Source of the DNA: Phallusia mammillata
Lineage: Eukaryota
Assembly: GCA_965637545.1 (NCBI GenBank)
Contig: OZ281496.1
Location: 4,712,001-4,776,000, forward strand
Reading direction: 5' to 3'
Length of the DNA: 64,000 nt
Positions 16,469 through 53,330 of this stretch are shown here, piece by piece. Both the position numbers and the translations under genes were made by a program. The notes below the pieces were generated by a model. The model ran no database searches. It worked only from the letters and a program-made list of their open reading frames with translations, and was not told where the DNA came from. Each line of letters opens with the position of its first letter. Positions within the stretch are counted from its first letter, which is position 1.

Positions 16469-19400
16469 TTAGTTGTTTAGGGGCAGGTTTCGTTCTGGTT
16501 GCACATGGTTGTCCGGGTTTCGTTCTTCACCATCTATTTGTACTGGTTCCTCTGCTGGAGGTCCATTAGGATCGAAAACATCAAATGCAAATGGGACTAA
16601 AACATTAATCATATATTGCAAAATGTTTGAAATGAGTTTTAGTTACGTTGAAGACAATCATAACCTAAATTTTCCTCACCTTGATTTACACGTGGTAGAA
16701 TGTGTCTATTGTCTTGATGCTGAAACCTATTCAAATCCTAAAAACGAAAATATTTTAATGGTATACTTTCTCTCATTTAAGACAAAACAAAGCATAAATG
16801 CGGTGCATTGTTTTACAGCACGTTTTTGAACACTTTAACACATTTGTTGTTACCTTTTTACGCTTTCCGGGTGGTGTTGGCATTAAATAAGCTGTCTGAA
16901 AATGAATAAAAAAAAAGCAGTGATAAGAGCAGCATTATCAACTTTAACTCGTTCTCAATATTTTTATTTGTGGATTGGTTAACGTTTAACGAAGAATTTA
17001 ATAACAAATTAACATAAACTGCTTCTGAGTCAAAAACATGGTTGTCGTGATAATTGTTAAATGATAAAGGCAACTTTTTCAATAAACATAAGTAACGTAA
17101 AGCAATTTAAACCCTGATTTCGGTTTGGTAATTAGTTTATTACTTCTACCTGGATTGATGATGAAATTATTTTTCACGAAATAATCATAAAATTTTGTCT
17201 TGCAGGCATTTTTTATTTCTTTGACTTGATGTGTTTAAAAGTTTTAAAATGCCTTAATTTTAAAATTACAGGAGGTCGCATGTCACCAGCTTGAATTAAA
17301 TTTAATGGATGAACCATGTTTACAAAAAAAAATAATTAACGAAATATTTAACACTTTGATGACATATATGAATCCATCTAGTGTCATTTGCAATTCAGTC
17401 TTAACTCATAAAAATAAAAAAATGATTTCTTCAGTGATTGTTGTGGAACGAAAGTGATGTGTCAAAACGAATCAGATGAAATCAAATTTGTTTTTCTCAA
17501 ATTTTTTATCAATTCACAAAATGCTTAGAAGAACGTTAATGCGAAAACATTGTTAAAGATTCAGGCTGGCAAACTCATTATTGTCAACAAATGTTAAGCA
17601 TGATTAATGTTTCGGTATGCTGCAAGTAATGCGGATTAAAAAGATGCAAAACCGTCTTTTAAATTAAAATTATATCTCAACAATGTTGTATTTTTTACCA
17701 GAGAATGTAATTTTTTTACTTACCGGGGGTATATGTCTCAGCGGCTGAAATAAATAAAACACAATGTTGAGGTATTTATTACAACGTCCTGTCGATTGCG
17801 GTTATAAAGTTCAGAACGAGACTGGTATTAAAAACTAAATACATAGCAAACATTAACCAAGCAAACCATAATTGTTGACGAAAAATATGATTAAGTAACG
17901 TACTTGTAAGACACGCAAATAACCTTTTAAACTCTGATTTCGGTTTTGGTGATCAGTTTATTACTTCTAACGGGATTTATGATGAAATGATTTGCACACA
18001 TTTTGTTTCACAAAAAGTTCATATTTTATGATTCTTTGTGTGATGATATGACTTGTGTTCAAAAGGGAACAAGAAAGTGTTTCGCATTATCACGGTTTTC
18101 ACTCAAGGGCTTTAATTCCACCACTCTATGGTTAACCCAATTTATGGTTAACCCAAAGTTAACAAAATAATCACAAAATTTTGTCTTGTTGACATTTTTT
18201 TTATTTCTTCGACTGGATGTGTTTAAAAGTTTTTAAATTCCTTAATTTTAAAATTACAGAAGGTCGCATGTCACCAGCTTGATTTAAATTTAATGGGTGA
18301 ACCATGTTAACAAAAAAATAATTAACGAAATATTTAACACTTTCATGATATATATGAATCCAAGTAGTGTCATTTGCAATTCAGTCTTAGCTCATGGTGA
18401 AAAATAATAAAAAATAGTTATGTTCAGCAATATTTGTGGAACGAAAGTGATGTGTCAAAACGAATCAGACGAAATCAACCTTGTTTTTGTAAACTTTTGA
18501 TCAATTTACAAAATGCTTTGAAATCGTTAATGCGAAAACATTGTTACAGATTCAGGCTGGCAAACTCATTATTGTCAACAAATGTTAAGCATGATTATTG
18601 TTTCGGTATGCTGCAAGTAATGCGGATTAAAACAATGCAAAATCGTCTTTGAAATTAAAATTATATCTCAACAGTGGTGTATTTTTTACCAGAGAATATA
18701 GTTTTTTTTACTTATCATCTATTTCAGCACCTGAAATAAATAAAACACAGTGTTGAGGTATTTATTACAACGTCCTGTCGATCGCGGTTAGAAGTTCAGT
18801 ATATATGAAACTGGTATTAAAAACTTTGTTGGTGTTTTGTTGTTTTTATTTGGAATTTTTAAAAGATTTAATAGCGGTCCTTAAAAACTTTACAAAAACA
18901 AGATAAAAATATCACATCGGCCAAAACCAATAAGATGAGAACTGCCTTTTTTATGTACGTTATTTTGTATGTTTATGATTGTCAACAATTGTTAAGCTAG
19001 GTTTGGTATGCAAATTACGATTCAGAGAAAAGCAATTCGTTTTTGCCCCAAAATTATCTTCCAACAGTGTTACATTTTTAACGCAAAACGTATGCTTATA
19101 CTTACCTTATATTTATCTTCGGGCTCATCAACATCCTGCTGAATGGAACAAAACACGGTATTAAGGCATTTATATTACAAAGTTTTGTGCTTTGCGAGTT
19201 TAAAGCACAAAAAATTTTAAATTGCTAACTAAATACCCAGCAAACATTAACCAAGCAAACCATAATTGTTGACGAAAAATATAATTTTTTTAATTTCTTT
19301 ACCGATTTAATGCTTTCGCTGCCAGCATTCGGAGAGTAGATTGGCTGTTCCACTGTTTGTCCTTTCAAAGTTAGTTTCACCATTTCTTTTTCCGCTAAAT

Positions 19401-19550
19401 TAGATGAAAAAGAACCTTTAGTTTTCAATGCCTATCATTTCTCGTATAAAACATTAGCCAATATGTAACATGAGAAAAACTGACCTTTGCTTGATACCGC
19501 CATATCTTCAGGTTTCTTTTGTGTTTGCAGTCGTTTTGAAATACGTGCAT
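16469..19550 (-). CDS. Micro-exon family gene A, about 158-aa uncharacterised protein
   Basis: Phase-compatible GT-AG exons: 19485-19550, 19303-19431, 19106-19138, 17724-17744, 16854-16895, 16680-16737, 16469-16596. Ends VPFAFDVFDPNGPPAEEPVQIDGEERNPDNHVQPERNLPLNN*. Start codon uncertain. Confidence 0.65.
17085..19283. repeat. Intragenic tandem duplication in gene A (about 17085-17890 vs about 17895-19283)
   Basis: Long high-identity stretches (17200-17840 vs 18200-18822; 17845-17888 vs 19240-19283). Confidence 0.9.
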
Positions 19551-22500
19551 CCATAATTTAGGCAAGGACTAAGCAAAGTGAATACTAATACGGAATCAAT
19601 GACTTTGCCAATATGATGTTAGCTATTTAGGTTTTGTATTGGTTGGAAACTGACTTAACATCTGAAAACCTAAACTAGTCACATGAAATCGACAACAGAG
19701 ATTTCAACAATCAAAGTTTTAAGAAAATATAAAAACATGATAAAATTTTACAAAAATCAACTTTAGTAGACGAATACGCCTGCAAACAAACCTTGAACTG
19801 TAGAGATCTAACACAAAACGCTTCATACATTGTAAGCACAAGAACTGAGTTGACGCACTACAGCAAAAAAAGACACATTTGAACTACGACACGTTACACC
19901 TCAGCGCTTACGAACGCTTAATAAGATGGGCGTGTACGCGTGAAGCGGCCTGGCCTCTTTAGCGACAATGTCTATTTACGTTATGGTTGAGCGGGTCTTT
20001 TCTAGTCTTGCCCAAGTGGGTTTGGCAGGAGATGCGTAACTCAAAAATCCAGTCGAGTTGAGAATGTTCAGTAAATATAAAACTAGTGACTATATGTACA
20101 ACTAGAAATACCCAGCAGACATTGCCCGGGAGATTTAAACCCAAACCCTATTTTTTACGAAATACTGTTCACTATTTAGGCGTTGCGGAATCAAACCTAA
20201 GACGTTTTATCGATACTTTTTTACCAGTATGTATTGGCTGAATGAACATATTGCCAAAAGTTCACTCAAATCAAATTTTTCGACAATATTAGTAACGGAA
20301 AACATAAATAAACAAAATTTATGTTATTGACTTGATCTAAAAGTTGAAAGTTGCTACGTTATTTGCTATAGGAGTTATATGAGAAATATTCATCATTTAT
20401 TAAAATCTAATCATTACAATTATGATTAAAAGTTACCATAAGATCTAACAATTTTTGTTTCACTTTTTCACCAAACCACCACGTCTATGACGTTTTGTTT
20501 TTGTTAGATGATTATCAACTAAACATAATAATTACCAGTAAATCTTTTTGTGATAAGTTATATTACTGTTCATTTGAAGTACAATTTTCAGCTAAACATT
20601 TTTAGGTGTCTAAAACAACTAACCTGAGAACTTAAAAAAACTTGTTATTATTTTCAGAAGCCGCACATACAAAATAAGCCCACATGCAAGTAATATTATG
20701 AGAAATTCATTTCGCTTCAACTTCCTTTTACTAACACGAGTGGTCAGCCTGGTCCCACGTGACTGATTATATCAGCAGACAAAAATATAGTATCCGGTCT
20801 TTAGATGCAAAAAAGAACTTGTGTTGCGATTGTGAATCTCTGTTGGTTAGCAAACTTTTATCGTCCCGAGGTGTAGCATTATAATTACCAAGTCATTTAA
20901 AGTACTTGGATGGGAAATTAATTTACAATATATTTGATAACATTTAATTTCTGTTAAACAGACCACGAGATTAAATTGAACACTGATGTGTGTGAAACTG
21001 GGCCACTGATAAAGTGGGAACAGTGCGTAGTTGCCGTCACGGTCAAATACACAAAAATAATGAACTTGCGTTATCCTCACTTTACCAATCAACTTCAACC
21101 TGGACATACAACAATAAGTTCCGTATGATACTGAATTCTCTCTGTTGCTATAATGAAAAAAAAACTACAATGACTTTGTATCAATAATTTGAGAAAGCTT
21201 AGAGTGGCGTGAATTGGTTTGGTTTTGCCATACAACACATGAAAAATTGACAATATCGCCATTACGTTACAACTATCTTCGTTGTTTAAAATACGGACCT
21301 AATTTTAATAATTAGAGCAAGTTTGGGAAATGTTAAATAGGGTAATCTGTCAAGGGTAACAAACAAAAAGAGGATACATTATCATTTTCGGTTCAACAGA
21401 AACATGAAGTAATTTATACAGCCCTTAAAATATTCTCTAACTTTACGAACACGTCTAATACTCCAACTATTCTTTACGATTATCAGTGGCACCTAATCTT
21501 ATCCAGCGACCCATTCAGTTTACACAGCGATATGGGGTGCCTACCTAAGTATGCTCAATAACATGCTCGGCGCCATTTTTTGCCCACAACAACGGTCGAT
21601 GACCATAAATCACTAAATAAATTTATTGTTACCTATTTTAGATTCGAAAAGAGTTTGTTTGAAATAAAATAAAATAATGTTCTGCATGAAAGTAAGATAA
21701 ACATGATTTTGCATCTTGGTAATCATTGTTTAAACATCTCAATTAAGATGTTGTTGTTTAGATTAGTGGCATGTTTATGTTACTTTCAAGTTTTCATGCC
21801 ATGTAGTCACCTGTGCTAGATGGATTGCACAATTTAAATGCACTCAATTACAATATTAAAACACAGAAAATACTATATGCAACCATAGCAATGATATAAA
21901 TACATAAATTTAAGGCAAATAACATACCCTCATTTATTTCTGCTAAATAAACCAACCTTTCAAGTCAGAAACCCGCACATAACGATAACATTAACCGTTT
22001 TGAGCAGGTTCAAGCTGCTTGATAGGCAGAAAACGCTCGATAGGCGATCGCTCGTTCATTTCTACGAGACATGAGCGCCCGAAATAAGTCAAGCGCGAAA
22101 CTAGACAGTAAAAATGAAATAAATACACAACGCAGGTTTGAGCGAGCGCGATATGCACGGTGTAAATGGGCTATTATGTTCGTTCACGATCCTTATGTTC
22201 CTCTTAGCCGCACACATGAGGTTTTGCGGTTTCCGTTGCACGCCTTAGGTTACCAAACGCTGGTCTGTTGCCTAATATAAAGGAAATCGTTAATATTTTC
22301 AGGATTATCAGAATTATTTTCCAGGCATTAACATTTTTCTGAGCTCAAATCAGAGATACATGCTTTGCATCTAATCGATTACTTTTGTACAAGCACAATT
22401 CAAATCTTACTAAGAGTCAACGACTGTTTATTTTTTTCTATTTAAACACGATTATTTGATCAAACAGTTAAGTGGTTGTCCTTGTTACCGGCACTCTGTA

Positions 22501-24443
22501 CTGAAAGGAGACAAAAAAATCTCGCGCACCTTCTATTGTTTTTTCGGCTGGCAACAGTAAATGTTGTTTTTCACCTAGGTACTATCTTATGCATCCACGT
22601 GTTAGAGTGTGTTTTCCAATTACAGTGTATATCGGCGAATAATTTTGCATTAAACTCGAGTTTTTAATAAAGCTCTTCTCAAACGAAAGATGCTTTATTC
22701 CATTTCTAAATTGCAAGCATAGGTATCGTCGGTTCTTTTCGTTACCACTATTTGTCTGATAGTCGAAATAAACTTTTGTGCAAAAATTAAAAACACAATC
22801 AAATTTTGGACCTAATTTCTAAAGAACTGATGGCAAAGGAACATCAAATCGAGTAAAAACGTACGCCTGCAAACAAGTCTAAACTGTAAAACTCTCACAC
22901 AAAATGCTTAATACATTGTAAGCAAAAGAACTGAATTGACGCACAGCGCACAAAGACACAAATGATCAACCACATGTTAAACCGTAACGGTTTCAAACGC
23001 TTCATAACGTGTGTCTGTGTGTAAGCGACGTGATTTTATCGTTAAAACGAAACTTTCAGTCTGCAAGCTAAACATTCATTTTATCGCAGACACTCCAGGA
23101 GACAAAGATGAAGTAGATGAAGCAGCTGACAACATCTTCCTACTTGAGATGTTTGTTCTTCTGGCTGCTCTAATTATCGCAGCCGGTTACCTGAGTTGGG
23201 GCAAAATTGTCCATTTCTGAAATCTAAGCAAATTGGTCTGTAGATAACATTTCACAATAACTTTCCACAAATTACATTGTACTGTTTCTGACCACATAAA
23301 AACTTTTAAAAGTTTTCCCAAAACAACAACTAGATTTCAACCTATAGGTTTAAAATCTCGTCATTACATTACATGCAATATTTACTGCTTTATTGTTGTC
23401 AGAAAAAGACCTTGTCAAAGTGTTTTTGTTTCTATAACTGTAGAACAATATAATCGGATGCAATTGATACTGTGTGTGTTGATTATATGTCCACCAAAGT
23501 CACATTCCAGTTTAGAGTAGCATATGTCTCTTAATTAAGTTGTGATAGACAGTATTACGAAGTTTAAAACATTGTTTACAATTTACAGAAATTTGCTTGT
23601 GACACAATTTGACTCTATTTCAAACGAGCTGTTTTTTGGAAATAATTGCGAAATTTGCACAATTCATGTTAACCACTAAATAAAACCGGAATGGAAGTTG
23701 AGAAATGGCAGTCACAGGCAGAATGAAGTTTTATGGTCAAAGCATTTACTGGTTAAGTATTAAACAAGTTTTTGGATGTCGAGAGGAAATAATCTTAACT
23801 CTAAAGCTTATTTGTGGTGGATTTGGTTTGCAAAGTTGGAATTGTTTCTTTTGAGGACTTGATACGATTTCATGTACAACTTAACGCTTCCACCTGGTGT
23901 ATCGAATGCATTCAACGTTTTCATTTAGTTTCAGATACAAACCAACCTACTGCAAACATATATAATCTGTTGAATCAACATATTTACTAAACAACAAACA
24001 ATTAATCATTTTACATGTTATATTATATTCACAAAATAATCATCATTTTTCATGTTATTGTTTCGAAAAAACTCAAAATGAATTTCGTAGCTTTTATTAA
24101 CTTTAACGGTTCATCTTTATTATTCAAATGGGTATTTGTTGATGTTTGTACTGCTTTGAACCAAAGTGGATAACCCTCTGGTCAATCAAGAACACTTTCA
24201 TTCGGAAAAAATAGTAAGGTGTTAAGGTGCGTACAACAAACTTCGCTTTGTGCACTAAGGAAAAATGCAACCAAACATTAACAAGGTACGAAAGGTGCGC
24301 ATGGTGCTGCTGTTTTGAGCCCAATTGTATAATTGCTTAGTTTACCTGTTTAATATTTTAATCAAGGCGAAAACTCAATATACAACTTCATGTTTTTGCA
24401 GGTTTGCTTGTTGCTGTATGGTTTAATTGCGATGAAGTAAACA

Positions 24444-27057
24444 TTAGTTGTTATGAGGTTGATTTTGTTCTGGTTGCAACTGGTTGTCCGAGTTTCGACC
24501 CTCATCGCCACCCATTTGCGCAGTTTCTTCTTCTGGAGGTCCATTAGGGTCGAAGTTTTCAAGTGCAAATAGGCCTGAAAAAACACCCACAAATAATTGT
24601 GTTTAATTATTTTGCAAGGCAATCTTCGAATTACATTTCCTACCTTGGTTTGGAGGTTCACGGTTTACGTTGTGTGGAAGTTCCACGATATTCTCTATCT
24701 ATACAAGAAAATTTGATCTGAAATATGAATTTGTTTTAAGTTCGCAGTTTTAATCATTTTTTAATCAATCCGACAGTATGTTCGTAAACTGAAGATAAAA
24801 AATATTTGGAATGTGGAACAATTTTTCAGCGGCAATACGGAACAAGAAACACCTAAAAACCATTCCATTAAAAACTATATATTTTTTGTCAAGGGTTTTC
24901 ATAAGGTACTTGGCGCATTTACCTCTTCGGACGAGCTGGACGATGATCGCCTAAATAACGAAGACTAAAAACATAATAAAAATACACGGTTATCAGTAAA
25001 AACACTGGTTGCACTCTGAGACCTTGCTGCTCCAGGGGCCTGCAACGGCATCATCATTTTAACCAAAGTTGTCAACGTAATGGTAGGAGAAGGTATTAAA
25101 CCCGTTTGGATTCTTGTTGGTAACATACCATATAATTCTAGCAGTGTAAATCCAAAAAAATGATGTTTTCTATACCTAGTGTGTAGTGTGCATTTTTTCT
25201 CCTAACAAACATTTTTAACTAGATTGTTTGTTGATTTATTGTTGTTTTAATTTTGACTTTTGGCGATGTAAATTCAATAGCGGTCCTTTAAACTTGACTA
25301 CTTAATGTATTAAAAAATGATGAAAATATCAACGACCCAACTTTTTTTACGTATGTTTTTGTTGTATGTTCTCGCAAAGACGTGAAAGAAATTGTCGATA
25401 GTGTTGCATTTTTACATCTGAATGCATTATTTTCTGTTACCACCTTAAGATACTTATTACAAAGTTCTGTCCTTGACGCGCTTTAAAGCTCGGTAACTAT
25501 AGAACTAATGACAAAATGCCTCAAACATTAACCGGGAGTTATAAAACCCAATATAATTTTTTGAAATCATAATTCTGGAAAATGCACCAATCAACAAACA
25601 ATTTTTCGAAATTTCCCACTGCATATAATTTTATGAAATATCACCCATTGTTTTTACTATATCTCACCTGCAAGAAGCCTATGTCTGATGAAAGTAAGAT
25701 ATCCTGAGAATAAAATGCCCAAGGTAAAAATACAGACAAATTAGGTTGTGTTTTGCCCATTCTGTGTTTTGTTGGACTTTATCACTCTACTGTGTTGCTT
25801 TTTTATCTCAGAATATAAATATCATACTTACCCTCGGTTCTAATACTTTTGATCGATCGATTTTTTTAAAAACATTTATGGCTGCATGATACGTTGCAAA
25901 CAATATTATTCAAATGAAATTGTGTCAAAAATATTCTTACCATCGGTGGGCCATCACGTCCTGATGATGGTTTGGGTGGCGATGATAGTTGTGATTGTTT
26001 TGGTGGCGATGGTGGTTTTGGTGGCGATGATGGTGGTGATCTTTTTACCCTCGAAGGGAATTTCTGTCGTGGACCTAATGATAGATGAGCCTCATCCTTA
26101 CCTTTAATATAACAAACTACAATAAAGTGGCAGCAACCTCGGAGTAACATTCAACGTCTAGTTGTGTTAAATTGATCAGGTAAACTTCTAACGTTATTCT
26201 TTTGATGGCAAAAAAAAAAAACGATGCAGACAACAAATGATAAAACATAAGTTGTATATTTATGTTTGTACAAAAATGGTGTAAAGTTAAAATGTATTGC
26301 ACTTCTGTTTGACCAAAAATGGTAAAATCTATTTTTTATGTAATTTAGTTGAGAAAAACCGAAAAGAATCAGTTTAAAAAGGAAACAGGGCATTCCTTAC
26401 CACATATTATAATTCCTACACGAGTTTGCACCGGTGAAAATGATGTGCGTGATGGTTGTGTTTTTTTCACCCTCGGAGCAGCTTTCCGTGGTGAGCGTGA
26501 TAATGTAAGAGACTCATCCTTACCCTACACGCAATAATGATAATAAAATAGGGATTTTACTACTAATAATAGTCTTCTTACTTGAACAATAGCATCGTCT
26601 GATAATGATGGAGAAGGCAGATCCTAAAAATAAAATAAAAAACTTACCACATAGGATCAACCGAATTTTGTTTCACTTTTTAACCAAACGAAAATGTCGT
26701 AGTTATATGTTTACTACGTGATTCTACATTTTGTAATATGTTTACTATTTTGGACTATCGAAAAATAAGAACCCACATTTAACAGAAATAAAAAAACAAT
26801 TTAATTTTTGAGGAAGGCTGAACTTGCTTTGATCGAAAACGTATTTAAAATGTTAACAAGCAACATCTTAATTTAAACTAATACTATACATACTAAAATA
26901 AACCAGTCAACCTGTTTTGAAGTTATACTTACTGCCATGAAGTAACAAGCTGGACGTAACAGACTATTCACAGCCTATAAAAACAATTATTTAATGCTTT
27001 CCAAAAACTGTCTGACATATTTTAAAGATTACTTACAAAGTTTGTGTTATTCTGCAT
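24444..27057 (-). CDS. Micro-exon family gene B, Ser/Pro-rich uncharacterised protein
   Basis: Exons 27037-27057, 26933-26974, 26582-26623, 26401-26524, 25941-26101, then either 25668-25703 or 25832-25839 plus 24923-24950, then 24644-24698 and 24444-24574 (GLFALENFDPNGPPEEETAQMGGDEGRNSDNQLQPEQNQPHNN*). Middle exon usage uncertain. Confidence 0.6.
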
Positions 27058-28040: not shown

Positions 28041-28505
28041 TCGTAAAACACGATTTTGTCTGTTTAGACTCGGACTTAACGCTGATTAGGTTTATGCTTA
28101 TTTTAAACCGGATATTGTCGGAATTTAACATGTTCAGCGGATTAATGTTTTCAAGGTGCGTTTTTGGCAAATCCTTTTCTTTTAATTTAGCGGAAATGTA
28201 CATTTTACAAACCTACGCTGTTGCAACCCAGATGACTTGAACCGTATTGGTATGCTGATGTCATATTGTATGACGCACAATTGCGTTTCCGCTTTTCTGT
28301 GACGTAACATTGCCCAAGGTACAGGTGTTGTTGTGTTTCGATTTGTTGTTTTGATTTATGTCCCTACCGAGTATTCTTTCTAATGTAAACTGAGACTATC
28401 TTGCGATTGCTTGTGTGTTTTCTCTTTATATCAGACATAGTTGACAGGTTCTGGTTTATATTTTGCATTGCAGCTGTATTTTCTTTCATTTTATTAGAGA
28501 ACAAT

Positions 28506-29203
28506 ATGGGTGCATGTGCTTTACTATGTTTGCCAAGAAATCAAGAGTGTAATAAACCGCCACCAACGTAAGTTTTAAAATGCGTTTTAATTGACTTGTG
28601 AACAACATATCTATGCATAGCTTGACACAGGAGGATATACTAAAAGAAAGAATAGAAAAAAGACAACACGAAAAACAGTGACACTCTAGTCTAGCAATAG
28701 TTTAGCAGAAACCTAAATGTGTTTTCAGTATTAAATCACTGGTTGTGTTTTTACTTAACCAAACTAAAAACAAGTTAGGAAAAAACTGGTTTTCACCTAG
28801 CAGCATTTAACACGTATTTTTTTTGTTTAGTATACTTCGAATATAGGAAACAGTTCGTCAAACACGGTAAACTTTGATTGATTGTGAGAGTAATTGTTTG
28901 CCTCATATAGCTTTAATATTGTCGTTTTCAGCTTGCGTTACCTTTTATAGGGTTTCTTTGAGATGAGACATCAAGGATATCATAATAAATTCGACAGTCA
29001 AAACAATGGTAGGAAGAATTCACATGAATATTGTCTGTGTATTTGAGTGAACATCATTGTTATGTTAAACTATTTATAGCCCGAAATGCGTTCTCCAATT
29101 TCGACCATAATATGAGCAGAACAACCAACACGTATAGATGGTGATGAGGGTCGAAACCAGTTCAACCAGTTACAACCACAACAAAAAGACACTCAAACAA
29201 CTA
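28506..29203 (+). pseudogene. Micro-exon family gene C, terminal exon frameshifted (pseudogene or altered C-terminus)
   Basis: Exons 28506-28567, 28729-28741, 28831-28866, 28951-29008, 29080 onward. The last exon is homologous (ARNAFSNFDHN / AEQPTRIDGDEGRNQFNQLQPQ), but a 5-nt deletion gives an early stop at 29142-29144. Confidence 0.6.
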
Positions 29204-30954
29204 ATGCTTGCTGTATTGCATTCAAACAAAACATAGCTTAATATTTGAAAAATCTAACTTTTTTAAGTTTTGTTCATTTCAAACAACCATATATACTAAG
29301 TTGTTATGTTAGCAAGACCGGATCCTACAATTAAATTTGATCAAAGAATACTAATGAAATGGTTTGCAATATTTCTTTTTTAACTTTTTTAAACAATATC
29401 CAGCATTTCTTCTTTTAATGCAATCTGAAGAACAAATGCATCATTGTGCACTGTATCGCGTGACTTGCTATCAAAAACCAGAGACAATATTTATTTTTAC
29501 ACAAATAAATGCTATTTTTGTTTTCAATTTTGTCATCGAACGTTTTTTATTTGCTGTAGATCATTTGCATGTATGTCTGGTCATCTGTACTTTCAGGTGA
29601 TGTTGAACCGCATAATATTCGTTCCGTACAACGTTTATCATGTGTCATTTTGAGTCAAATAGACACGCAAATATACAAAGTCTTTTGTAAATTTGTATAG
29701 TCATCCAGGCTTGTTTGAACTGCTTGAGGCAAAAGTGTAATCAAGAGTTTGTAGCAACATCTTTTATTATGTTGCACTTGAACCCGCAAAGAATCGAATA
29801 AATTGCCCTTTTTGTTTTGCTCTTTTAAGGTGAGCGCACTGTCATATAACGTATTGGAATGTTTCCTTCTGCATCTACAGCTGTGCCACATGTCAGCGGT
29901 TATTTTTAAACCTGCATTTGCTGTATATTTTGGTCAAAAAAACAGAAGAAAATGTTTTAGCCCAGACGAATCTGAATTAAATCAATTTCTAGTATTATAA
30001 ATATTATTGCACTAAAAAGATTAATTTGCAAGCCCACTTGGATGATCAAAACATGTTAAAGCAATATTCTACCTGATTAGGATAATATTGTATTATCCAG
30101 CAGTAATATTTTATACAGCCATTGCAAAGTATTTTGCAGACATAAGGGTGGGATATACAAATTAAAAATTGCCATGTTCAAAATGGCATTGCTTTCAGGT
30201 TGTAAATATTTTCTACATTTACTTTTCATTTGTACTTATTATGCAATGAATCTTGGCTGAGCAAAAACAAGAATGGTTGAGCTTTAAGTTTTTATGTTTG
30301 GTAATTTATCAACCTTTGTTTCTACGGAATTTTTTATCCATGTTGATTCATATTTGTCTTTAGGTGCAGGATTAAAAACAAGCACTCCGTGTTCAACAAT
30401 CAACAAAGTCTGTGCATCTGGAATGAAATTAATTAGCGTCGCAATCAATCAAGTGTGGACACCAAGACGTCATGGTGGCGGGTGGCATGGAAAGCATGTC
30501 AAATGCTCCATTTGATGCCACGACTGCCACCGGCGTATGGTGGCGTAAAAATGATCGACCTTATTGTTCATGATGGCTTGACTGATGCTTACGGGAAATT
30601 TCACATGGGTATATGTGGATAGAATACTGCAAAAAACATTCAATATCTCGTCAAGAGCAAATGCATATGCCATTGAGTCATATACAAGAAGTGCAAAGGC
30701 TACTGAAGATGGGCAGTTTAAAGATGAAATTGTTGATGTTGTTATTTGTAGCGTCTCACTCACGCTTTGCGGGATTATACCAGATTTATTATGTTGCTGT
30801 CCAATACGCAGCACACCATCAGCACACGCTAGGTAGAATAACCGGCACATTATAAAACACTACATTATTGAAGGTAAATTGTAAAGTATATTTTACAAAT
30901 ATTGGATAAAACTTCCTGTACAATTTGATTGCATATGAAACATGTTTGATAAAT

Positions 30955-31170
30955 CAAGTTTATAGAGCTCTTCTTGCAAATGTATTTTTATTCCGACATT
31001 TGATTTTCGAATTCATGAATTTTCCTTTGTTATTGTGCTCTGTACTAGTCGCATTCAGTGTTATTTACCCTGATGAAGACGACCTGCAAAGGACATTGAA
31101 ATGTCAGAATAAAAATACATTTGCCAGAAGAGCTCTATAAACTTGCTATATGCCTGGCAGCAATAGCTTA
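30955..31170. mobile_element. Penelope-type inverted pseudo-LTR, family 1
   Basis: Inverted arms CAAGTTTATAGAGCTCTTC..TTATTCCGACATTT / AAATGTCAGAATAA..GAAGAGCTCTATAAACTTG plus a short unpaired tail; CTGATGA..GAAA motif at 31070-31105. Confidence 0.6.
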
Positions 31171-39400: not shown

Positions 39401-40745
39401 GAACAACCAAATCTATGACGGTTGCTTGCTCTCCTTGTTGCGAGGACCAAAAGCCAACGGAGGGCGGAGCTCGACGTAATGCGATCCAACCAAATGACGA
39501 TCATCAACTCTCTGATGTAAAACGCAGAGCTTCTGTTACAATTGAAACGCCTTCCCTGGCTTGCAGGTTGTCGAAATTGTTACTCGAAATTGTGTTCTTG
39601 TAGACTGGTTCTCTGGTCTGCTTCAGTCGTTCGTACACTACTCGAATTAGGTCGTGCGAATCTGGTTTAAGAATCCCGTCTTAAGCAATCAAGTTTTAAC
39701 TCATACTAATTTAGTCAAACAAAATACAATAACCAATATTAATTCAGTCATACAAAATAACACTAACTAATACTAATTCAATCGAAATTCAGTAACTGAT
39801 ATTAATTCAATCATACAAAATAACACTAACTAATACTAATTCAATCGAAATTCAGTAACTGATATTAATTCAGTCATACAAAATCACACTAACTAATACT
39901 AATTCAATCGAAATTCAGTAACTGATATTAATTCAGTCATACAAAATAACACTAACTCATACTAATTTAGTCAAACAAAATACAATAACCAATATTAATT
40001 CAGTCATACAAAATAACACTAACTCATACTAATTTTAGTCAAACAAAATACAATAACCAATATTAATTCAGTCATACAAAATAACACTAACTCATACTAA
40101 TTTAGTCAAACAAAATACAATAACCAATATTAATTCAGTCATACAAAATAACACTAACAAATACTAATTTAGTCAAACAAAATACAATAACCAATATTAA
40201 TTCAGTCATACAAAATAACACTAACTCATACTAATTTAGTCAAACAAAATACAATAACCAATATTAATTCAGTCATACAAAATAACACTAACTCATACTA
40301 ATTTAGTCAAACAAAATACAATAACCAATATTAATTCAGTCATACAAAATAACACTAACTCATACTAATTTAATCGAGATTCAGTAACTGATGCTAATTT
40401 AGTCAACTAAAACACAGTAATTAACACTAATTCAGTCACACGAAATACCTAAAGTAATACTAATTCAGTCAACCAAAATGCAGTAAGTTATGCTAATTTA
40501 GTCAAACAAAATACAGTTGCTAATACTAATTCAGTCAACCAAAATACTGCAACTAATACTAATTCAGTTGCACAACAACACTAAATATTATTAATTAGGC
40601 GAACAGAGTACACCTACTATTACTAATTCACTAACACAACATACATTTAATTATATTAATTTAGTCATACAAAAAAAAACACTATTCAATGCAATTCATT
40701 CATACAAATTACACTAACTATAATACTAATTGAGTTAATCTAAAT
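36405..40745. repeat. AT-rich satellite, about 33-bp unit, with two embedded non-repeat segments and a homogenised 67-bp dimer sub-array
   Basis: Unit about AATACTAATTCAGTCAAACAAAATACAGTAACT; interruptions at about 37281-37875 and 39350-39695; near-perfect 67-bp repeats at about 39955-40370. Confidence 0.93.
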
Positions 40746-42196: not shown

Positions 42197-42440
42197 GGTC
42201 TCCCAAGCATTCCCAACTGAGCTACACAGGCCCGGTGAAAAAAAAAAGCCGAAAAAAAGTCCCGTTGCCTGCTTTGTATGGTGCACATGTTAACTTCGTA
42301 GTAGGGTATTCGTAGTAGGGTATAACGCCTGTAATAGCCAGGCCTGGTGTACTATGTCTTTTCGATAAGTATGCCGTGATCGCTTGCCTGCATCAACGCT
42401 TCAGGGCTGATCCCAGTAAGAATATATTCATCTTAGCTTG
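42197..42440. repeat. Copy of the tRNA-head repeat family (see 59017-59445)
   Basis: CCAACTGAGCTACACAGGCCC, CCGTTGCCTGC..CTTCGTAGTAGGG and CGCTTCAGGGCTGATCCCAGT blocks shared with the 59-kb copy. Confidence 0.75.
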
Positions 42441-42712: not shown

Positions 42713-45700
42713 ATGTGGTTATTGTTTCTATTGTTTTTCGTCGGATGCGTGGAAGGTGAATGTCCGGGTGAGGATCTCAGTCTCGCTCCACGACCTTATA
42801 CAAGTAAGAAATCATTTTATTTGATAAACCTTCAATGTTAGGCTTTAGTCTTTAATATCGCTATTTGAACAAAAACTGAAATCTATTACACGAAAAAAAA
42901 CGATATTATTTATACAATGAAAACAAATGCACGTGTTTTTCTTTTTGCAAACCATAAATATATATGAATGTATTCATTACCGACTGAGAACTTATGAAGT
43001 CGGGCCAAAACACATTTCCATTTCTGCTTTATTTCTTATTGACTTAGACTTCCGTTGATTATTATTATTACAATTTATTCAAAGCTTTTTTTATTGACAG
43101 AACCCGAAAATCTCTCGGTTTGCGAGGAACCGTATCGTGGTCCCAACTGCACCTGCCCTTCTTCAATGTTCGAATGCGCTTGTCACAAGTTTGGTCGGTG
43201 TAAAAATCCAGGATGCATTGAGATGTGGTGGGTAAACAACTGGAATAACCAGTGTGGTGATTGGAGTGATGAGTTTGGTGATTATTGTCCCGAAGGCAGG
43301 TTTCAGTGTGACTGCTTCAATACTACTTGTAAAGGTGTAATTGGGTGTGGGCCATATTGGGCAGTGCAATGTAATGGAAACACAGAATGTATAGATGGCA
43401 GTGATGAAGTTAATTGCTCTTGTCCAGCTCATAAGTTTGAATGTGGTTGTTTCAAAACTAACAATTGTACAGAAGGTCGTGGTTGCCTCAAAATAGACCA
43501 CCTTTGCGATGGAATTAATGACTGTGGAGATTGGGGTGATGAAGTTAATTGCACTTGTCCGGCTGATACATTTGAATGTCGTTGTTACAAAACAAAGAAC
43601 TGCACAACTAGCAACGGTGGTTGCATCAAGAAAGACAAGCATTGTGATGGAATTAATGACTGTGGAGATTGGAGTGATGAAGTTAATTGCACTTGCCCAG
43701 CTCTTAAGTTTGAATGCGATTGTTACCAAACAAAAAACTGCACAACTTACAATAGTTGTGTTGGCAAAAACAATCAATGTGATGGATATGATGACTGTGG
43801 AGATTGGAGTGATGAAGCAAATTGCACTTGTGCAGCAGATGCGTTTGAATGTGATTGCTACAGAACTAGTAACTGCACAAATAAAGTTGGTTGCATCGAC
43901 AAATACTATCAATGTAATGGAGTAAATGACTGTTGCGACTTGAGTGATGAAGTTAATTGCACTTGTCCAGCCGAAAAGTTTCAATGTGCTTGTGTTGGAA
44001 CGAAACAATGCATTGGAGCAGCGGGAAGTTGTATTGACCGATCTTTGTTATGTGATGGTAATGATGACTGTTTTGATCGTAGTGATGAGACACATTACAC
44101 ATGCAACTGCTCTGGAGTTCACGCAAGATGTCCGCGCGATCCTGGTAACCAACTTCGCACATCTACTGGCAGATGTTTACCTGTAAACTGGATTGGTGAT
44201 GGATTTAAGGATTGCATTGATGGAAGTGACGAACTGTGTTCAATCACAAACTTTACATGTCAATCTTGCACAATGTTTGCCACCACTTGTAAGAGTGAGC
44301 AGCTTGTCAGGTATCTTGTACATTCTCCAGTCCCACAAGAGTGCAACACGGTAATCCAACCGTCGTGTGTTGATGACATCAACCGTTGTGAAAACAAGAA
44401 TGTGATTTGTGTCTCATCAAACTGCAACGAAAGGAAAAATAAATATTGCCAGAAGGTTTTTATTTGTGAAAATGAAGAAATGATAGCTGGTAACAACTTC
44501 TGTGACTTAGAAAGTAGCTGCAGTGACAAAAGCGACGAAATCAAGTCAGGATTTGGATTTAAATGCTCTGGATCATCGAGACTAGGTGATTGCGTTTTGC
44601 CCCAAGTTAACGTTTACGATTCAGTGGCTCAATGTTCTGATATGTCTGATCTTTGTTTTGTCAACGGACAGTTCAAATGTTTTCAGTGCCTGGATAAAAA
44701 GTTAATCATATCACCAAAGCAAGTTTGTGACGGTATTGTGGATTGTTTTGATATGTCAGATGAGTGTTTATGTTTAAATCAAAGTTTGTGTAAAGATATA
44801 AGGGGTTCTTGTCCGTCAAATCAGATGCATTGTCAAAATAAATCTGTTTGTTCGGATCAAAGTGGAAAGTTGTGCAATTCAAGTGTGCAATGTGTTAACC
44901 AAATGAACACGAAATACTGCTCGGTTACTAATAACTTGAAACAAACTCAGTGTTTGCCAGAAGACACCAAACACCTTAGACTTGACGAAGTGTTTAGGTG
45001 TGCAAAAACTGACAACCCACCATTAAGGTATTGGTTTCAGTATTGGTTCAAGGGCGATGAATTTGACCTTTTGTTTAACTCAATATGCGATGGAATAGTG
45101 GACAAGCTTGGGATGTTTGGGGAAGTGAATTGCCCAAACAGATTTTATTGTTTATCCAAAGAAAAAATCAGCATAGACATCTCGCAGGCTTGCGACGGAA
45201 AAATTGATTGCGATGATAGTTCAGATGAATTTTTAGGACTTTGTCACAATGTTCGCTTTTATTGCAAAAGCAAAAATAAGATTTCCATTGACAGAAAAAC
45301 TCTTTGTGATGGAATTATCGATTGTGACAATGAATCTGATGAAAGCAGATGCCGTTGTGAAAAAGTGAGGTTTTATTGCACAAATAAACAACCTTTGTCG
45401 GTTGAATGGAAACTGGTGCAGAATGGAATTCGCGATTGTTCAGACGGAAGTGACGAATGTGTAAACTTGGCTGGAGACGCATTTGCAGATGTCAACGAAA
45501 TGATTGCTAATTCAATTTACAGAGCAATTTTTTGGATAACAGCTGTGTTAGCCTTGGGTGGAAATTTGTTTGTGTTCATTGCAACTGCCTACAGCTTATG
45601 GAATGTAGACAGGAACAAACATGTTTTTATTAACACCAGTATTTTTATTCTTAACCTCTGTTGCTCAGATTTCCTCATGGGAATTTATCTGCTTGCAGTT

Positions 45701-46669
45701 ATAGTGCAAGCCACACAATTTTCGGGCTCGTATTGTCTATTTGATAAGCAATGGAGATCAAGTAGTTTGTGTTCAGGACTTGGAGCACTTGCAATTATTT
45801 CCTCAGAGGCTTCAGCGTTTACTATGACGGCCATGACTACTTTTCGCCTTGCATCAGCCTTCAAACCGTTTACAATTCGAAATATGGGTGCTCTTAAAGT
45901 TTTCCTTGCTGAATTGTTTTGCTGGATTTCAGCTGCGGTTTTGGCAATCATTCCCTTACTTCAAGTCAATTCAGAATACTTTACAACTGATATCTGGTTT
46001 CCAAACAACATTTTCGGAAATGACTTTGTTTCCAGGGAAAACATATCACTTCTTGCACAAAGAATTACCAGTATAGAACCGGAGAGTTGGGACCAAGTGA
46101 AACAAACAATTAAGGAAACATTTCCCCGCAACCCAATCAAGGGGGAGTTTGGATATTATGGAGAAACAAGCGTATGTATGCCACGTTTGTTCGCCACAAC
46201 CAGTGAATTTGCTTGGGAATATTCAACTTTCCTCATCACAATCAACTTTCTTATGTTCATCTACATGGTGGTTGGATATATTCTCATCTACAAACAAAGC
46301 AATCGGATGAAAGAAGCCAGAAGCAATGACGTCAGCTCCAAGATGCAGAAGAGAATCTCGAGGTTGATTCTGACCGACTTCTGTTGCTGGATTCCGATTT
46401 GCGTCTTGGGATATTTGAGTATTGGAGGAATCAAGATGCCACCAGATGCTTATGTGTTGAGTGCTTGTCTGTTGCTTCCAATCAACAGCGCTCTCAATCC
46501 ATTGCTTTACTCAAAAGCAATAGAAGATCAACTTACTAGGGCCAAAAAATATGTGAGACAAAATGTATCTTCTATCGAGGCAATTACAAGTCCCCCAACG
46601 GAATTGACTGTGACCTACAATGCTGGTGCCGTTCAGGAAGGCGACAGAGTCATTGAAGTGGTTGGATAA
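42713..46669 (+). CDS. LDLa-repeat class A GPCR (GRL101/RXFP-like 7TM, no LRRs), 1219 aa
   Basis: join(42713-42803, 43101-46669). Signal peptide MWLLFLLFFVGCVEG; phase-1 GT-AG intron; about 14-15 LDLa modules (CDG..DC.D.SDE); 7 hydrophobic helices with GN (TM1), NLCCSDFLMG (TM2), TDFCCWIP (TM6) and LPINSALNPLLY (TM7). Confidence 0.93.
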
Positions 46670-46852
46670 AGTTTCATCCTTGGACACAAAAACGTATACG
46701 ATATTTTGCTTTAAAATCGTTGCATTTTTTGAGGGATTAATCATGATAGCTTTTATCTGATTTTCTTACGATTTACAAATGTTTTCGATAAAGTGTTAAC
46801 TATTTGAGCATTTTGAGACTTGAAATTTAAATGCATTGTACTCAAAGTTTGT

Positions 46853-46947
46853 GCCTGGCGTACTTTGATTTATGTATATATTCGCCTTGATGGTTGGTGT
46901 GCATGGACGCTTCAGCGCTGATACCGTTTATGAATTTATCTTAACTT
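46853..46947 (+). repeat. Isolated B module of the tRNA-head repeat family
   Basis: GCCTGGCGTACT..GACGCTTCAG.GCTGAT..TTATGAATTTATCTTAAC matches the reverse complement of 59347-59445. Confidence 0.7.
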
Positions 46948-48428: not shown

Positions 48429-48914
48429 TGTCATTAAACGTTATTTGTACAATTGTTTAACCATTTTACCAGAGGCACTTCAAAATGACGTCATGTGCGT
48501 GGTTTTGGTGGTACTTTATATCAGCTGAAAAATTGGAACAATCGAAACAATATTTTGATCAATAACAGACTCAAAACGTCGGTTGAAACGATACAGTTGC
48601 CAGAAGGGATTTAGGTAATATAACTAAGTTAAGCTACTTGCATTGGTCGGCTATAGGGAGTGAATAAATGTCTTTGAATTGGATTACTTTGCTCGGCTAC
48701 ACATTACCTATTTTGCCTTAAAAAACCATTGATTTGGGCCACAACGTGGTTTTTATTAAATGGATGACATGTCCTCAAACTGCCACCGATAATGATGTAG
48801 TATATTTAGATACAACAATACGTAATATCACAAAACCGTGCAAATCATCGGAAACTCTATCAAATTCACGATAAACATTATGTTAGTATATGTAGATGTG
48901 CACCGCACTAACTA

Positions 48915-49911
48915 TTAGGTTCCAACAGGTCGGTTTTGTACAGGTTGCAGATTGTTTTTTAGGTTTCTATTCCTATTACCGTCCATTTCAGCTAGTTCTT
49001 CTTCTGGTGGTCCGAAAGTTGGTGGCGGTATGACTGATTCCTCTTTGTATGCAAACTTGTCAAAAATATAAACAAAACTTTTTCCTTTTGTAACATTTTT
49101 TGCCAAATTAGCAAATAGTTAGTTTGCTAGAAGCCGTATTTGTTACGAATTGCAAATAAATTTATAGTTTAATGATGAAAATAACGGCCCAAGTAAACGT
49201 AAAAAAGCGACATGCTTTTTTACAATAAGTGTTTATAAACAGGTGTAACTGATGTGGCCTTCATATCGCTAATGATAGTATGAGCATTTACCGAAACGTT
49301 TGAACGCTTAAGCATGTCGTTTGTTACGTTTATTGAGGCCGTTATTTTCACAATATAATTTATGAACAGATCTTTATATAGTACTTCAAAATTCATCGTT
49401 ATATTGGAAATTATAAAAGGATTATGAATGAAATAGTTCTTGCCTGTACATTATTACCTTGGACATGTATCGCAATGTATTACCACATCTGAAAGTTGTA
49501 CCCTTGGGATATGCATTGCCTGGTGCCCGTGGTGCTGGTATTGATTGTAGATGTAACTGCGATGGCAATGGAGGTGCTGGTGGTATTGGTTGTAAATGTA
49601 GTTGCAATGGTTGTATATGTGGTTGCAATGGTTGTATATGTGGTTGCGTCGATGGTGCTGATGGTTCGAGTTGGTGTGGAAAATTCCGATTCTGAAAAAC
49701 ATCAGATTTAAACATTTTGATTCTAAGAACAAAAGCAAAACTGATGACAGCGCTGACAAACTGTGATGTTTATCTTAAACTACTTTAAAGATCCAAAAAC
49801 ATCAGCATAAACACATGTTACCACTTAGCAGGATAAACACATGTTTCATTTCGCATTAATCGTACTTACTTCATTTGTATGTAGTGAATGCTCCATTTCT
49901 TCATGTGACAT
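48915..49911 (-). CDS. Micro-exon family gene D (diverged, Pro/Gln/His-rich), about 138 aa
   Basis: Exons 49870-49911 (MSHEEMEHSLHTNE), 49458-49691 (QPHIQPL repeats) and 48915-49055 (..GPPEEELAEMDGNRNRNLKNNLQP..*), all phase 0. Confidence 0.6.
49170..49395. mobile_element. Penelope-type inverted pseudo-LTR, family 2, second copy (intron of gene D)
   Basis: Same core (GGTGTAACTGATGTG..CTTCATAT..ATGAGCATTT..CCGAAAC) and tail as 31460-31715. Confidence 0.6.
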
Positions 49912-51341
49912 TGTTGTATTCAACAACTTCTTCGATGAATCAAATCAGACAAGAATGTTTAGATTTTAAACAATTTGCTAGAAACTCACTCATGTAAACT
50001 ATAACACAATATAATTGTTTTTTTGAATAAATTTTGCATAGAAAACGTTTAAGTTTTGTTTTAGAACGATTCAAGCAAACCGGTAGGAAAAGTTCTGTTC
50101 GTTGTGTAACAAAGTCCGCTGAAAAGTGAAAGAATGAATTTACTGCGCAATATGTATTGTTTCCCTAATACTTACGTTTACACAAAGTGACTTGTCATGT
50201 CACTAATGATCAAACAGTCATATGTAGAATAAAAAAGGTGTTCAATTCTCAGGTAACATTTAAACACAATTAGAAATGGTTTGAAAGTTTTTTTCATCTT
50301 TGGCAACAAGTCACATGTTTAATTATATATGTCGTCTTCGTTTATCCAACTTCGAACACATTCACCCACTGTGTACAAAGGGTGTCATATTTAAATAATA
50401 TACTTGCTTTAGTATTGCAAATGATTTGATTGTTAACTTCTAAACCTTGTTAAATATCTAAACCCCATGTTCATAACACTTAACACATTGTTCTATACTG
50501 GTCTTGTGCAAAAATGTTCATGATGTCGCAACTTATTTATTGTTTTACACAACTTCGGAAATAGAGTTTTTGAAGGAACTTTAGAAACTTGAAAGGCCAG
50601 CAATTATACAGGCAAAAGTCCGTGCCCTTCAAGTACGTCTTTATACATGTAATAGCTTTCAACATTAGCAATATGAAATTTCGTAGCCATCTCATATAAC
50701 TTCTCAGTTTATCCTGAACTTTTAAAACGCACTTTTATTTTTTACCTGGTCTCTGTAGAACTGATAATTTGCACATATAGAAGTGTAGACAAGTGCTGTA
50801 GAGGATTTAACCACGAGAAACATGCAGACGCATAAGAAACAAAATCAAAACATTGGCCACGTCATGTCACACTTTGACGCGCAACTTCCAGGATATGACG
50901 AAAAAACCTTCTCAAAATGAAGTGTATATATGGTATCGTACTTCCAACAGGCGCTCTTGTCAGATAAGCTGTACATTTTGCATGGTTTTTAGCTTGATAA
51001 TTTTGCGATTTTTAATTCAGACAATTAGTTCAAAAGCCACGCATCAATATATTAATAGCTACTAGAAACATTTATTGATGGAATATTTTATAGATACATG
51101 CATGATATCTAAACAACATACAGTTCTTCGTCCAATGAGAGTTTAATCTTTACATCCCCTAGCCACATTTATGACAGAAGCTTTTCCAAATAGTGAGAGA
51201 AGCTTTTTTAAATAGTAATAAGGTTAATACAATAAGGTGTATTACAAGTTCATCCATCTGCATTGGAAAGGGCCAACAATATTCTAAACCTATGGCAAAT
51301 AAACGCAAAAGCATAGTTTTTAATGTACATTTAGGCAAGCA

Positions 51342-51900
51342 TTAGTTGCTACGAGGCTGATTTCGTTCTGGTTGCAGCTGATTATCCGGGTTTCGACCCT
51401 CATCGCCATCTATTTGTGATGGTTCTTCTGCTGGGGTTCCATTAGGGTCGAAGTTGTCAAATGCAATTCGGGCTGAAATGATTGTTTGGTAACATCAAAA
51501 ATAGTGTCCAACGACGACAGCAATAGTTTTTCAACATAATCTACTTACATTGGTTTACAGGAAGCGGTGGTGGAGATGGAATGTTTGAATTAAATTCCCT
51601 CATCTTAATCTTGTTGAAAATCTGTACAGAATAATTTGAGCTTGACTTCGTGTCATAGATTTGTGACAGTTTTTAGTCAGTTTGTTTGCTCCTGCTAAAT
51701 GTTAAAATTATTAACTGAGATTCAAAAACACCGTTCAAACAAAGTTAATAGAATAGAGAATATTGAAGTTATGCGGTCTTCATCTATGATTAAAAATTGC
51801 TTTAAATTTTTTTTGTACATTTTTATATTTTTACTAAATACTGTTTTTTAATTATTATTCCTACTTGGTTTGCTGGCTGAAATGGTGGACAAGGCAGAAC
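51342..51900 (-). CDS. Micro-exon family module E (3 exons; own start exon not found)
   Basis: Exons 51865-51900, 51549-51621, 51342-51472: VLPCPPFQPANQ | IFNKIKMREFNSNIPSPPPLPVNQ | SRIAFDNFDPNGTPAEEPSQIDGDEGRNPDNQLQPERNQPRSN*. Confidence 0.7.
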
Positions 51901-52701
51901 CTATAAAACAAAAAAGCAACAAAATTTCAAAAGAGTAGGTATATTACAATGACGTCCATCAGCCATAATTTACAGCTTTCTGAAAGCCCCTAAAAAGGAT
52001 TCAGGGCACCTATAATCCTGTTCAACATAGGTGCATACATTGTAGGTATTTGCTGATTTGTTTAACAATCGGGCACCAATTTTAGACCCACATCAAATCT
52101 TTTTCTATAATCCAAACTAAAACCCGAAAATAATCAAGGTATACAACGATTAAATTAATGTGCCGTTGTTGCAATTACATAAATGATTTTGGAAGTCGAG
52201 ATGGCAAAAAGATAATAGAGTTAATACAATTATAGCAAACAAATCAATACATGAAAAGTAACTCTGCTAAAACTAATAATATAGAAACTTTTAATATACA
52301 GGATTGCTAAGTTCCGGTATGTGGCACACTCAAACATGTTAAAAGCAGTTTGTGTAAAAAGTGCTGAGAGTTAAGATCACTCGGTTTAGTCTATGGTTCC
52401 ATAATAATAATAACAATAAAATCAAGTCAAAACTCAGTTTTTTATTAAATTTAGTCCCCAAATCTATTCTAGTCTTACTGTAAATTTAAATAACCGCGCT
52501 CTTTACGTCATTTGTCGGTATTTGTTAGTAGCTTTGAAATGAGCTTTTGGATTTTCTACCTATTTTTCTGTAATTTTAACGCAGTCCCCTTAGAAAAGTG
52601 GCCAGCTTCTTCGGACAGCGCAACAGGTCACCTCTGCAATCTCCGTAATTACTGCAACGTACGTAACCAGAACACCGACAGACACCATCAAATGAAATGC
52701 T

Positions 52702-53330
52702 TTAAATCGGCGGTGTATGTTGTGTATCTTTTGGGATTTGATCCTCATTGCCATCCGATTGCTCCGGTGGGTCTGGGATTCCGTTTGGGTCAAATTTGTC
52801 AAATGCTATTCGATCTGATAAAAGTGACCCATTACATACACAAATTTTTGCAATGTCTATCGTTTTTTAACCTTGGTTTGGTGGTGGTCGGTGAAAGGTA
52901 ATGTCACATTCTTCGCATGTAATCTTGTTAGAAACCTGAAAAATAAAAAGTTAAGTTGTTTCTTCAATGACAACAGTGTGTTGTGTATTTAGCGAAAAAT
53001 AAAAACAAAAATACGTCACCTAATAAATACCCCTCATCTTCAGTGGTTGGAACAATATTTTGGAAGCATTTTTAATGCAAACTATAAAACTATTCATTTA
53101 CACATATAACTTTCGACAATATTTCTTTAGAAATCAAGTTATTACTGTCGGTACCATTTTGCAACTGCAGAATGTACTGCCGATATCGCCAAAATGTTGT
53201 TAATTATAACCTAATTCAATTAAATGGGAATTAAATTTTGCAAAACATTTGCACTCACCGGTATTTTGGTATTTTGCTGTTCATCCCACACCGAACTTTG
53301 TGGTTCTTTTTCCGACGTGTTGAATGACAT
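52702..53330 (-). CDS. Micro-exon family gene F, 82 aa
   Basis: Exons 53259-53330, 52872-52935, 52702-52814: MSFNTSEKEPQSSVWDEQQNTKIP | VSNKITCEECDITFHRPPPNQ | DRIAFDKFDPNGIPDPPEQSDGNEDQIPKDTQHTPPI*. Confidence 0.7.

Follow-up and report, generated by a model that had tools for sequence, protein, structure and literature searches.

A duplicated gene family with a conserved last exon and variable N-termini in the ascidian Phallusia mammillata

Lineage-specific (orphan) tandem families of small disordered proteins, which evolve by birth and death, are a general class. Schistosome micro-exon genes (MEGs) are composed mainly (up to 75%) of exons of no more than 36 nt, encode signal peptides, show documented exon skipping and have high ratios of nonsynonymous to synonymous substitution (dN/dS, or omega) (PMC8293314, PMC4015677). 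The motifs recognised by TRAF proteins have been defined as Px(Q/E)E, Px(Q/E)xxD and PxQxT (PMC6125299). Here we analyse a gene family found in a window of 64,000 nt of the ascidian Phallusia mammillata (assembly GCA_965637545.1, contig OZ281496.1, positions 4,712,001 to 4,776,000), which shares traits with each of these systems and is undescribed as far as the searched resources reach. At a probability of roughly 60%, we read it as a family that evolves by birth and death in ascidians and encodes disordered cytosolic proteins, in which a conserved C-terminal docking tail follows loosely constrained N-terminal spacers; the exact exon junctions, the cytosolic location and the docking role are what we infer.

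The locus resembles the orphan tandem families in its tandem cluster, in the pseudogenes or relics lying beside intact copies, in the lack of detectable relatives and in its moderate purifying selection. It differs from them in that exactly one terminal exon is conserved, behind a fixed phase-1 junction after NQ or NN, and in that new micro-exons are caught being born and lost. On these comparisons of sequence, the family would work like a lineage-specific family of motif adaptors. An earlier inspection of the window (the original prediction) had proposed an unrecognised multi-copy family in which a constant last exon is joined to freely skippable variable exons, possibly forming a diversification system. 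The duplicated and unrecognised family, the constant last exon under selection (omega 0.34) and the variable, disordered N-termini of probably cytosolic proteins stand, whereas the skippable exons and the diversification system are not supported.

The conserved last exon

The family is arranged in two groups, with copies A, B and C at 16.5-29.2 kb and copies D, E and F at 48.9-53.3 kb. A broken ACAT1-like gene, satellites and a G protein-coupled receptor with LDLa repeats (LDLa-GPCR) lie between both groups, and a CUB-ZP gene follows the second. The last exons are the following:

16469..16596, minus strand: last exon of A, entered in phase 1, 41 codons plus stop, strong acceptor, homologous to those of B, C, D, E and F
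23090..23250 (approximate bounds), minus strand: probable decayed seventh last exon, from nhmmer and control-window scores
24444..24574, minus strand: last exon of B
29080..29204, plus strand: last exon of C, frameshifted, stop after 20 codons
48915..49055, minus strand: last exon of D, the most divergent, entered in phase 0
51342..51472, minus strand: last exon of E, whose 87-88% matches in RNA contigs are other paralogues
52702..52814, minus strand: last exon of F, 36 codons, with a shortened C-terminus

All six homologous exons of the original prediction were recovered at their positions and strands, each preceded by an AG acceptor and ending in TAA. Those of A, B, C and E share 73-84% DNA identity, D and F being more distant, and the pairwise homology is strong (z=16-25) within the exon and falls to about 0-1.5 in the flanks, where intron and untranslated sequences do not align between copies. 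A profile run over the whole window returned the six last exons and, beyond them, a single weak trace at about 23,090-23,250, with an nhmmer E-value of 1.4 and scores above all 300 control windows for three queries; on this similarity, the trace is probably a decayed seventh copy. In copy C, a deletion of 5 nt followed by another of 1 nt shifts the frame and leads to a premature stop after 20 codons, so that C is a probable pseudogene, and the proposed consensus of the tail is kept in A, B, D, E and F and lost in C. The penultimate exon of 55-73 nt ending in NQ or NN, from which the last exon would be entered in phase 1, was found in A, B, C, E and F (58, 55, 58, 73 and 64 nt, respectively); D is the exception already remarked on, since its last exon is entered in phase 0 from an exon of 234 nt. 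The homology claimed between the introns at 18835-19270 and 25230-25560 is likewise clear (z=14, with 0 of 300 shuffles as good).

Differences between the last exons are concentrated at third codon positions. A codon model gives an omega of 0.34, a value not near 1, and omega=1 is rejected with p=3e-5 for five copies and p=2e-4 when D is left out. The last exon is thus, as judged from codon substitutions, under purifying selection, and the codon-position bias together with an omega below 1 indicates that it is coding. A transposon or a structured RNA was also considered as the nature of these repeats and rejected, as the genes give no Pfam or Rfam match and both signals point to coding sequence.

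Relatives of the family were searched exon by exon. No exon matched Pfam at E<=1, and a hidden Markov model of five last exons gave 0 matches at E<=0.001 among 1.84 billion representative sequences. A homologue search with alignment, which detects only proteins of a length similar to the query, produced 7 candidates, 0 of them at E<=10. Neither two metagenome scans and the ESM Atlas nor the PDB sequences yielded any relative, Rfam gave no match over the family genes, and a literature search found no description of the family; no described family or transposon was therefore matched in the databases searched. In leave-one-out tests, sequences like A, B or E were detectable (E 1e-11 to 1e-17), whereas D (E=0.06) and F (E=9) were missed. 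As divergence of the D or F kind escapes these searches, the family may exist unseen in other ascidians. A synteny search found a last-exon match in 0 of 5 loci around relatives of the LDLa-GPCR (one of them from Ciona), a weak indication given that this receptor family is multi-copy.

Transcription and state of the copies

Four probable RNA runs, whose tissues are not on record, were compared with the region 48860-54850, which holds D, E and F; their contigs show presence, not absence. No cover was found on introns or unique intergenic DNA, which fits RNA as the kind of run. Gap-free contigs 84-88% like the last exon of E were present in three runs from three studies, with three different ones in a single run. 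These contigs differ from E in ways that match none of A, B and C, which indicates transcription of additional paralogues located elsewhere. A single contig stops exactly at 51472, the acceptor, as expected of a spliced message. An end at 51474 is ambiguous, given that an unspliced paralogue would carry the acceptor AG (51473-51474) as well. The contigs reach 27-206 nt upstream of the last exon, unitig ends not being transcript ends, and in the E-like contig shared between runs the listed changes preserve both the frame and a P-A-E-E motif. No joint between family exons, and no skipping event, was seen in these contigs.

These data bear on the idea that the copies in the window are largely decaying duplicates (pseudogenes or silent copies) of one or a few active genes located elsewhere, the signal of selection being inherited from the active lineage. 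The frameshift of C, the relic near 23,100 and the broken ACAT1-like neighbour would all fit such decay, as would expressed sequences that differ from A, B, C and E and the lack of RNA contigs for D, E and F in the four runs. On the other hand, five copies that differ at 26-77% of their synonymous sites all retain open frames and canonical splice sites, and the contigs show presence only and come from tissues not on record. General decay of the window copies seems improbable to us.

Right after the stop codon of F, a piece of 129 nt (52577-52705) shows 0 differences from contigs in all four probable RNA runs, and the flanks of these contigs match nothing in 48860-54850. On the minus strand, AG and GT delimit it (52699 to 52581), and its open, cysteine-rich frame is reminiscent of somatomedin B, with zero Pfam matches and no partner exon in the window. 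Either an exon belonging to a long host gene or a recent insertion, by which F was shortened, might account for it.

Small exons and variable N-termini

All exon joins are predictions from the window sequence. Upstream of the last exons, the models contain the following:

16680..16737, minus strand: A penultimate exon, 58 nt, phase 0 to 1, ending in NQ
16854..16895, minus strand: A symmetric exon of 42 nt, positional match of B 24923-24964 (exon z=2.5, weak)
17724..17744, minus strand: A symmetric micro-exon of 21 nt (duplicated unit 3), with the highest splice score among the small exons
18716..18730, minus strand: A dead micro-exon copy (duplicated unit 2), with its acceptor retained, GT replaced by AT at the donor and a stop in frame
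19106..19138, minus strand: A symmetric micro-exon of 30/33 nt (duplicated unit 1), tandem acceptor CAGCAG
19303..19394, minus strand: A predicted exon of 92 nt, phase 1 to 0, frame kept
19485..19554, minus strand: A candidate first coding exon from ATG, with an uncertain 5' end, yielding a 146-aa open frame
24644..24698, minus strand: B penultimate exon, 55 nt, ending in NQ
24923..24964, minus strand: B symmetric exon of 42 nt, serine-rich
25668..25703, minus strand: B symmetric micro-exon of 36 nt
25941..26101, minus strand: B exon of 161 nt, proline- and serine-rich, phase 1 to 0, duplicate of 26401-26524 (z=9)
26401..26524, minus strand: B exon of 124 nt, phase 0 to 1
26582..26623, minus strand: B symmetric exon of 42 nt (B42b), homologous to E 51865-51900 (z=5.2)
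26933..26974, minus strand: B candidate exon of 42 nt, the most 5' one, uncertain, with a weak donor and an ATG in frame close to its end
28831..28866, plus strand: C symmetric micro-exon of 36 nt
28951..29008, plus strand: C penultimate exon, 58 nt, ending in NN
49458..49691, minus strand: D exon of 234 nt, rich in proline, glutamine and histidine, with a 21-nt tandem repeat inside
49870..49911, minus strand: D first coding exon from ATG, 42 nt, giving a 138-aa open frame
51549..51621, minus strand: E penultimate exon, 73 nt, ending in NQ, homologous to F 52872-52935
51865..51900, minus strand: E symmetric micro-exon of 36 nt (E36); the start-codon exon of E is not fixed
52872..52935, minus strand: F penultimate exon, 64 nt, ending in NQ
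53259..53330, minus strand: F first coding exon from ATG, 72 nt, giving an 82-aa open frame

Joined in this way, the predicted exons form uninterrupted frames of 146 aa in A, 210 aa in B (from its most 5' candidate exon), 138 aa in D, 79 aa in E (with no fixed start) and 82 aa in F. An upstream candidate exon of C at 28435-28567 (plus strand), with a hydrophobic run and then an MGxC-like start, does not share the phase of the C exons that follow it.

Splice matrices were trained on the neighbouring CUB-ZP gene, and in-frame, stop-free exons of 15-75 nt were counted in the gene spans. There are 7 strong small exons in sense against 0.2 expected from control DNA, and 10 against 1.6 at a looser cut-off, with 0 in antisense in both cases. 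Their GC content (0.435) equals that of other exons, introns having 0.294. The tiny symmetric phase-0 exons of the original prediction are thus borne out as features of the sequence, with lengths of 21, 30/33, 36 and 42 nt, strong splice sites and numbers above chance. Strings of them occur only in A and B, however, as C and E have one each and D and F no internal one. The upstream exons, taken to be mostly unalignable between paralogues, are so only in part, since B42b and E36 (z=5.2), the 73-nt exon of E and the 64-nt exon of F (z=5.2), and the 124- and 161-nt exons of B (z=9) do align.

Gene A contains an exon-plus-intron unit three times, corresponding to the 30/33-nt exon, a dead copy at 18730 and the 21-nt exon; the flanking introns of the units remain alignable (z=9.6 and 7.1) while the exon has changed from 30 to 21 nt. 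As this alignment shows, the micro-exons of gene A arose by tandem duplication of the unit, with one copy now dead. Gene B has its own duplicated exon pair (124 and 161 nt; z=9). The alignment of B42b with E36 requires small compensating gaps and is shifted in frame midway, a pattern which suggests that the reading frame is guarded more than the residues. The variability of the N-termini looks like the outcome of relaxed constraint, exon duplication and compensated frame shifts rather than of demonstrated positive selection.

A quite different account would be somatic diversification, with many combinations of symmetric micro-exons skipped to create a repertoire of N-termini that vary, under diversifying selection, ahead of a constant tail. 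The symmetric phase-0 exons look real and exceed chance, the units of A have alignable introns around an altered exon, and the 30/33-nt exon of A has a tandem acceptor, all of which would suit such a system. The contigs of the D-F region, however, provide no support for freely skippable exons, no gene has more than 3 or 4 skippable exons, D and F have none, and exon duplication would leave symmetric phase 0 equally well when there is no regulated skipping. The compensated frame shifts within homologous small exons point, moreover, to weak constraint. Somatic diversification is rather unlikely in our judgement.

As in schistosome MEGs, small lineage-restricted proteins are encoded here by a multigene family with short symmetric exons and exon birth by local duplication, and the exons of 21, 30/33, 36 and 42 nt are all phase 0-0, which makes them removable without a frame shift. 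Unlike in MEGs, exons of no more than 36 nt contribute only 0-16% of each gene's coding length and are absent from D and F, the modelled frames show no signal peptide, and the common part is a C-terminal exon under purifying selection. The likeness to MEGs drawn at the outset thus breaks down on the share of micro-exons and on the signal peptide, both of which define MEGs. Membership in the MEGs was rejected on these two features, in an ascidian genome and with no protein relatives found.

Protein products, possible partners and genomic setting

The modelled proteins are proline-rich, with 65-77% of disorder-promoting residues, and no hydrophobic segment appears in any modelled frame (maximum 19-residue hydropathy 0.76). 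The absence of signal peptide, transmembrane segment and known domain holds as regards Pfam domains and the modelled frames of A, D and F, the starts of B, C and E being uncertain; the products are probably cytosolic. AlphaFold, run on the last exon with a five-row alignment, gave no secondary structure and a pTM of 0.16.

In the birth-and-death family that we favour, a young, lineage-restricted set of genes (five intact copies, a frameshifted one and a probable relic here, with more elsewhere) would produce small (about 80-210 aa), intrinsically disordered proteins. The last exon, of about 42 residues, would be the functional unit, docking onto a folded partner through short linear motifs, as suggested by the fact that this tail is the only conserved part of a disordered protein. 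These motifs would be an aromatic FDxFDPNG stretch, an acidic P-x-E-E stretch and then RN-P-DNQ-x-QP. The N-termini would act as spacers rich in proline and serine, which lengthen when small exons are duplicated in tandem and shorten when they are lost, and the phase-0 symmetric exons may survive because the last exon stays in frame.

A TRAF/MATH domain is the leading guess for the docking partner, which would make the proteins adaptors or decoys in immune signalling. A TRAF-type motif stands at one and the same place in all five intact copies, as Px(Q/E)E in A, B, D and E and as PxExxD in F. TRAF-binding disordered adaptors and receptor tails such as TANK, CD40 and LMP1 likewise carry Px(Q/E)E or Px(Q/E)xxD in an acidic, proline-rich disordered stretch (PMC6125299), but the proteins described here share with them no sequence homology, coiled coil, transmembrane segment or other domain, and the motif is short and common by chance. 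As it is also no better conserved than its surroundings, we regard TRAF binding as a tentative proposal with the odds against it. An extended form, in which a constant intracellular docking exon (possibly TRAF-binding) would be combined with N-termini diversified by fast micro-exon birth and combinatorial skipping to give variable immune adaptors or decoys in ascidian cells, making this chordate family the intracellular counterpart of schistosome MEGs, strikes us as improbable.

Several points weigh against the favoured reading. TRAF-like motifs appear in 3-27% of shuffles of the last exons, and the copies are not independent; the columns of the motif are no more conserved than the neighbouring FDPNG, RN and QP columns. 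The signal of selection is moderate and comes from about 42 codons, with single pairs often not significant, and the small-exon p-values flatter somewhat, the gene spans having been drawn after the exons were seen. Furthermore, B, C and E have uncertain 5' ends, and no contig of the four runs matches the exons of D, E or F as their own sequence.

Unfixed 5' ends leave room for the proteins to be the cytoplasmic tails of LAT-like or TNF-receptor-like proteins (membrane-anchored signalling adaptors or receptors), with exons for a signal, a transmembrane segment or a lipid anchor missed further upstream. TRAF-type motifs are characteristic of receptor tails (PMC6125299), and hydrophobic candidate exons exist in A and E as well as in C, the latter with its MGxC-like start. 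Yet these candidates, 5 in sense against 2 in antisense and 2.1 expected, are not clearly above chance, are not homologous between copies and, in C, do not keep the phase. D and F run from ATG to stop without a hydrophobic exon, upstream of the last exon the RNA contigs cover only 27-206 nt (with the reservation on unitig ends made above), and the modelled proteins have few tyrosines, so that we give this possibility little chance.

The last exon might also be what remains of a degenerate EF-hand, or else a known domain too short to have been noticed. The AFDxFDPNG stretch recalls the entry helix and first loop residues of an EF-hand, a resemblance that we take as a lead only. The EF-hand was rejected, since Pfam gave no match at E<=1, the PDB matches at E<=10 included no EF-hand, loop positions 5-12 are discordant and a helix was not predicted; a missed known domain is very unlikely.

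The window has 36.5% GC, is AT-rich and contains zero N. The ACAT1-like thiolase at 29560-32324 (plus strand) shows several frame shifts and stops in 30365-30800 and an intact 3' open reading frame (ORF) at 31743-32324, which makes it a probable pseudogene or part-duplicate; a homologue search with it retrieved general thiolases only. The LDLa-GPCR at 43055-46669 (plus strand) is intronless, with 1204 aa and 12 LDLa repeats, and belongs to the rhodopsin type and to an expanded ascidian family; its best relatives are 40-46% identical, the closest named ones coming from Ciona and Clavelina. The CUB-ZP gene at 57300-63600 (plus strand) is multi-exon, with CUB-like exons and a ZP-C domain. Ty3/gypsy-like retrotransposon ORFs at 803-5100 (minus strand), with 5438-5922 and 7419-7900, encode by eye gag, protease, reverse transcriptase and integrase, and lie near a direct repeat of 485 nt (98.6%). 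A C2H2 zinc-finger array occupies 9527-10326 (minus strand), with an 84-nt period and about 9 fingers. Between the gene groups, the satellites at 33237-34601 and 36399-40745 comprise a 70-nt satellite and a long, strongly skewed 33-nt satellite, and copies of a family of tRNA-like short interspersed elements lie at 59177-59235 (minus strand), 54712-54766, 42213-42438 and 46850-46942.

Closer to the family genes, duplicated upstream blocks were found near A, B and F (19775-19924 and 22862-23007; 20437-20485 and 26650-26698; 53947-54153 and 54218-54410). Some of them end in splice donors, and they are candidates for non-coding first exons or promoter duplicates. D and F have a further block in common:

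50845..50875 and 54452..54482, minus strand: 31-nt block upstream of D and of F, with the core TGACATGACGT (87%, E=1.6e-5)

This block is a candidate promoter element, a function that it may have from its position.

The family is invisible to ORF and domain scans, and gene A offers a clean case of how small symmetric exons arise in disordered proteins. Without TRAF binding and skipping, this would be a well-supported orphan family of moderate interest. If the tail does bind TRAF, the sister group of vertebrates would possess immune-signalling adaptors of a new class, with fast turnover, and if skipping also occurs, the family would be a cytosolic analogue of the micro-exon diversification of parasites.

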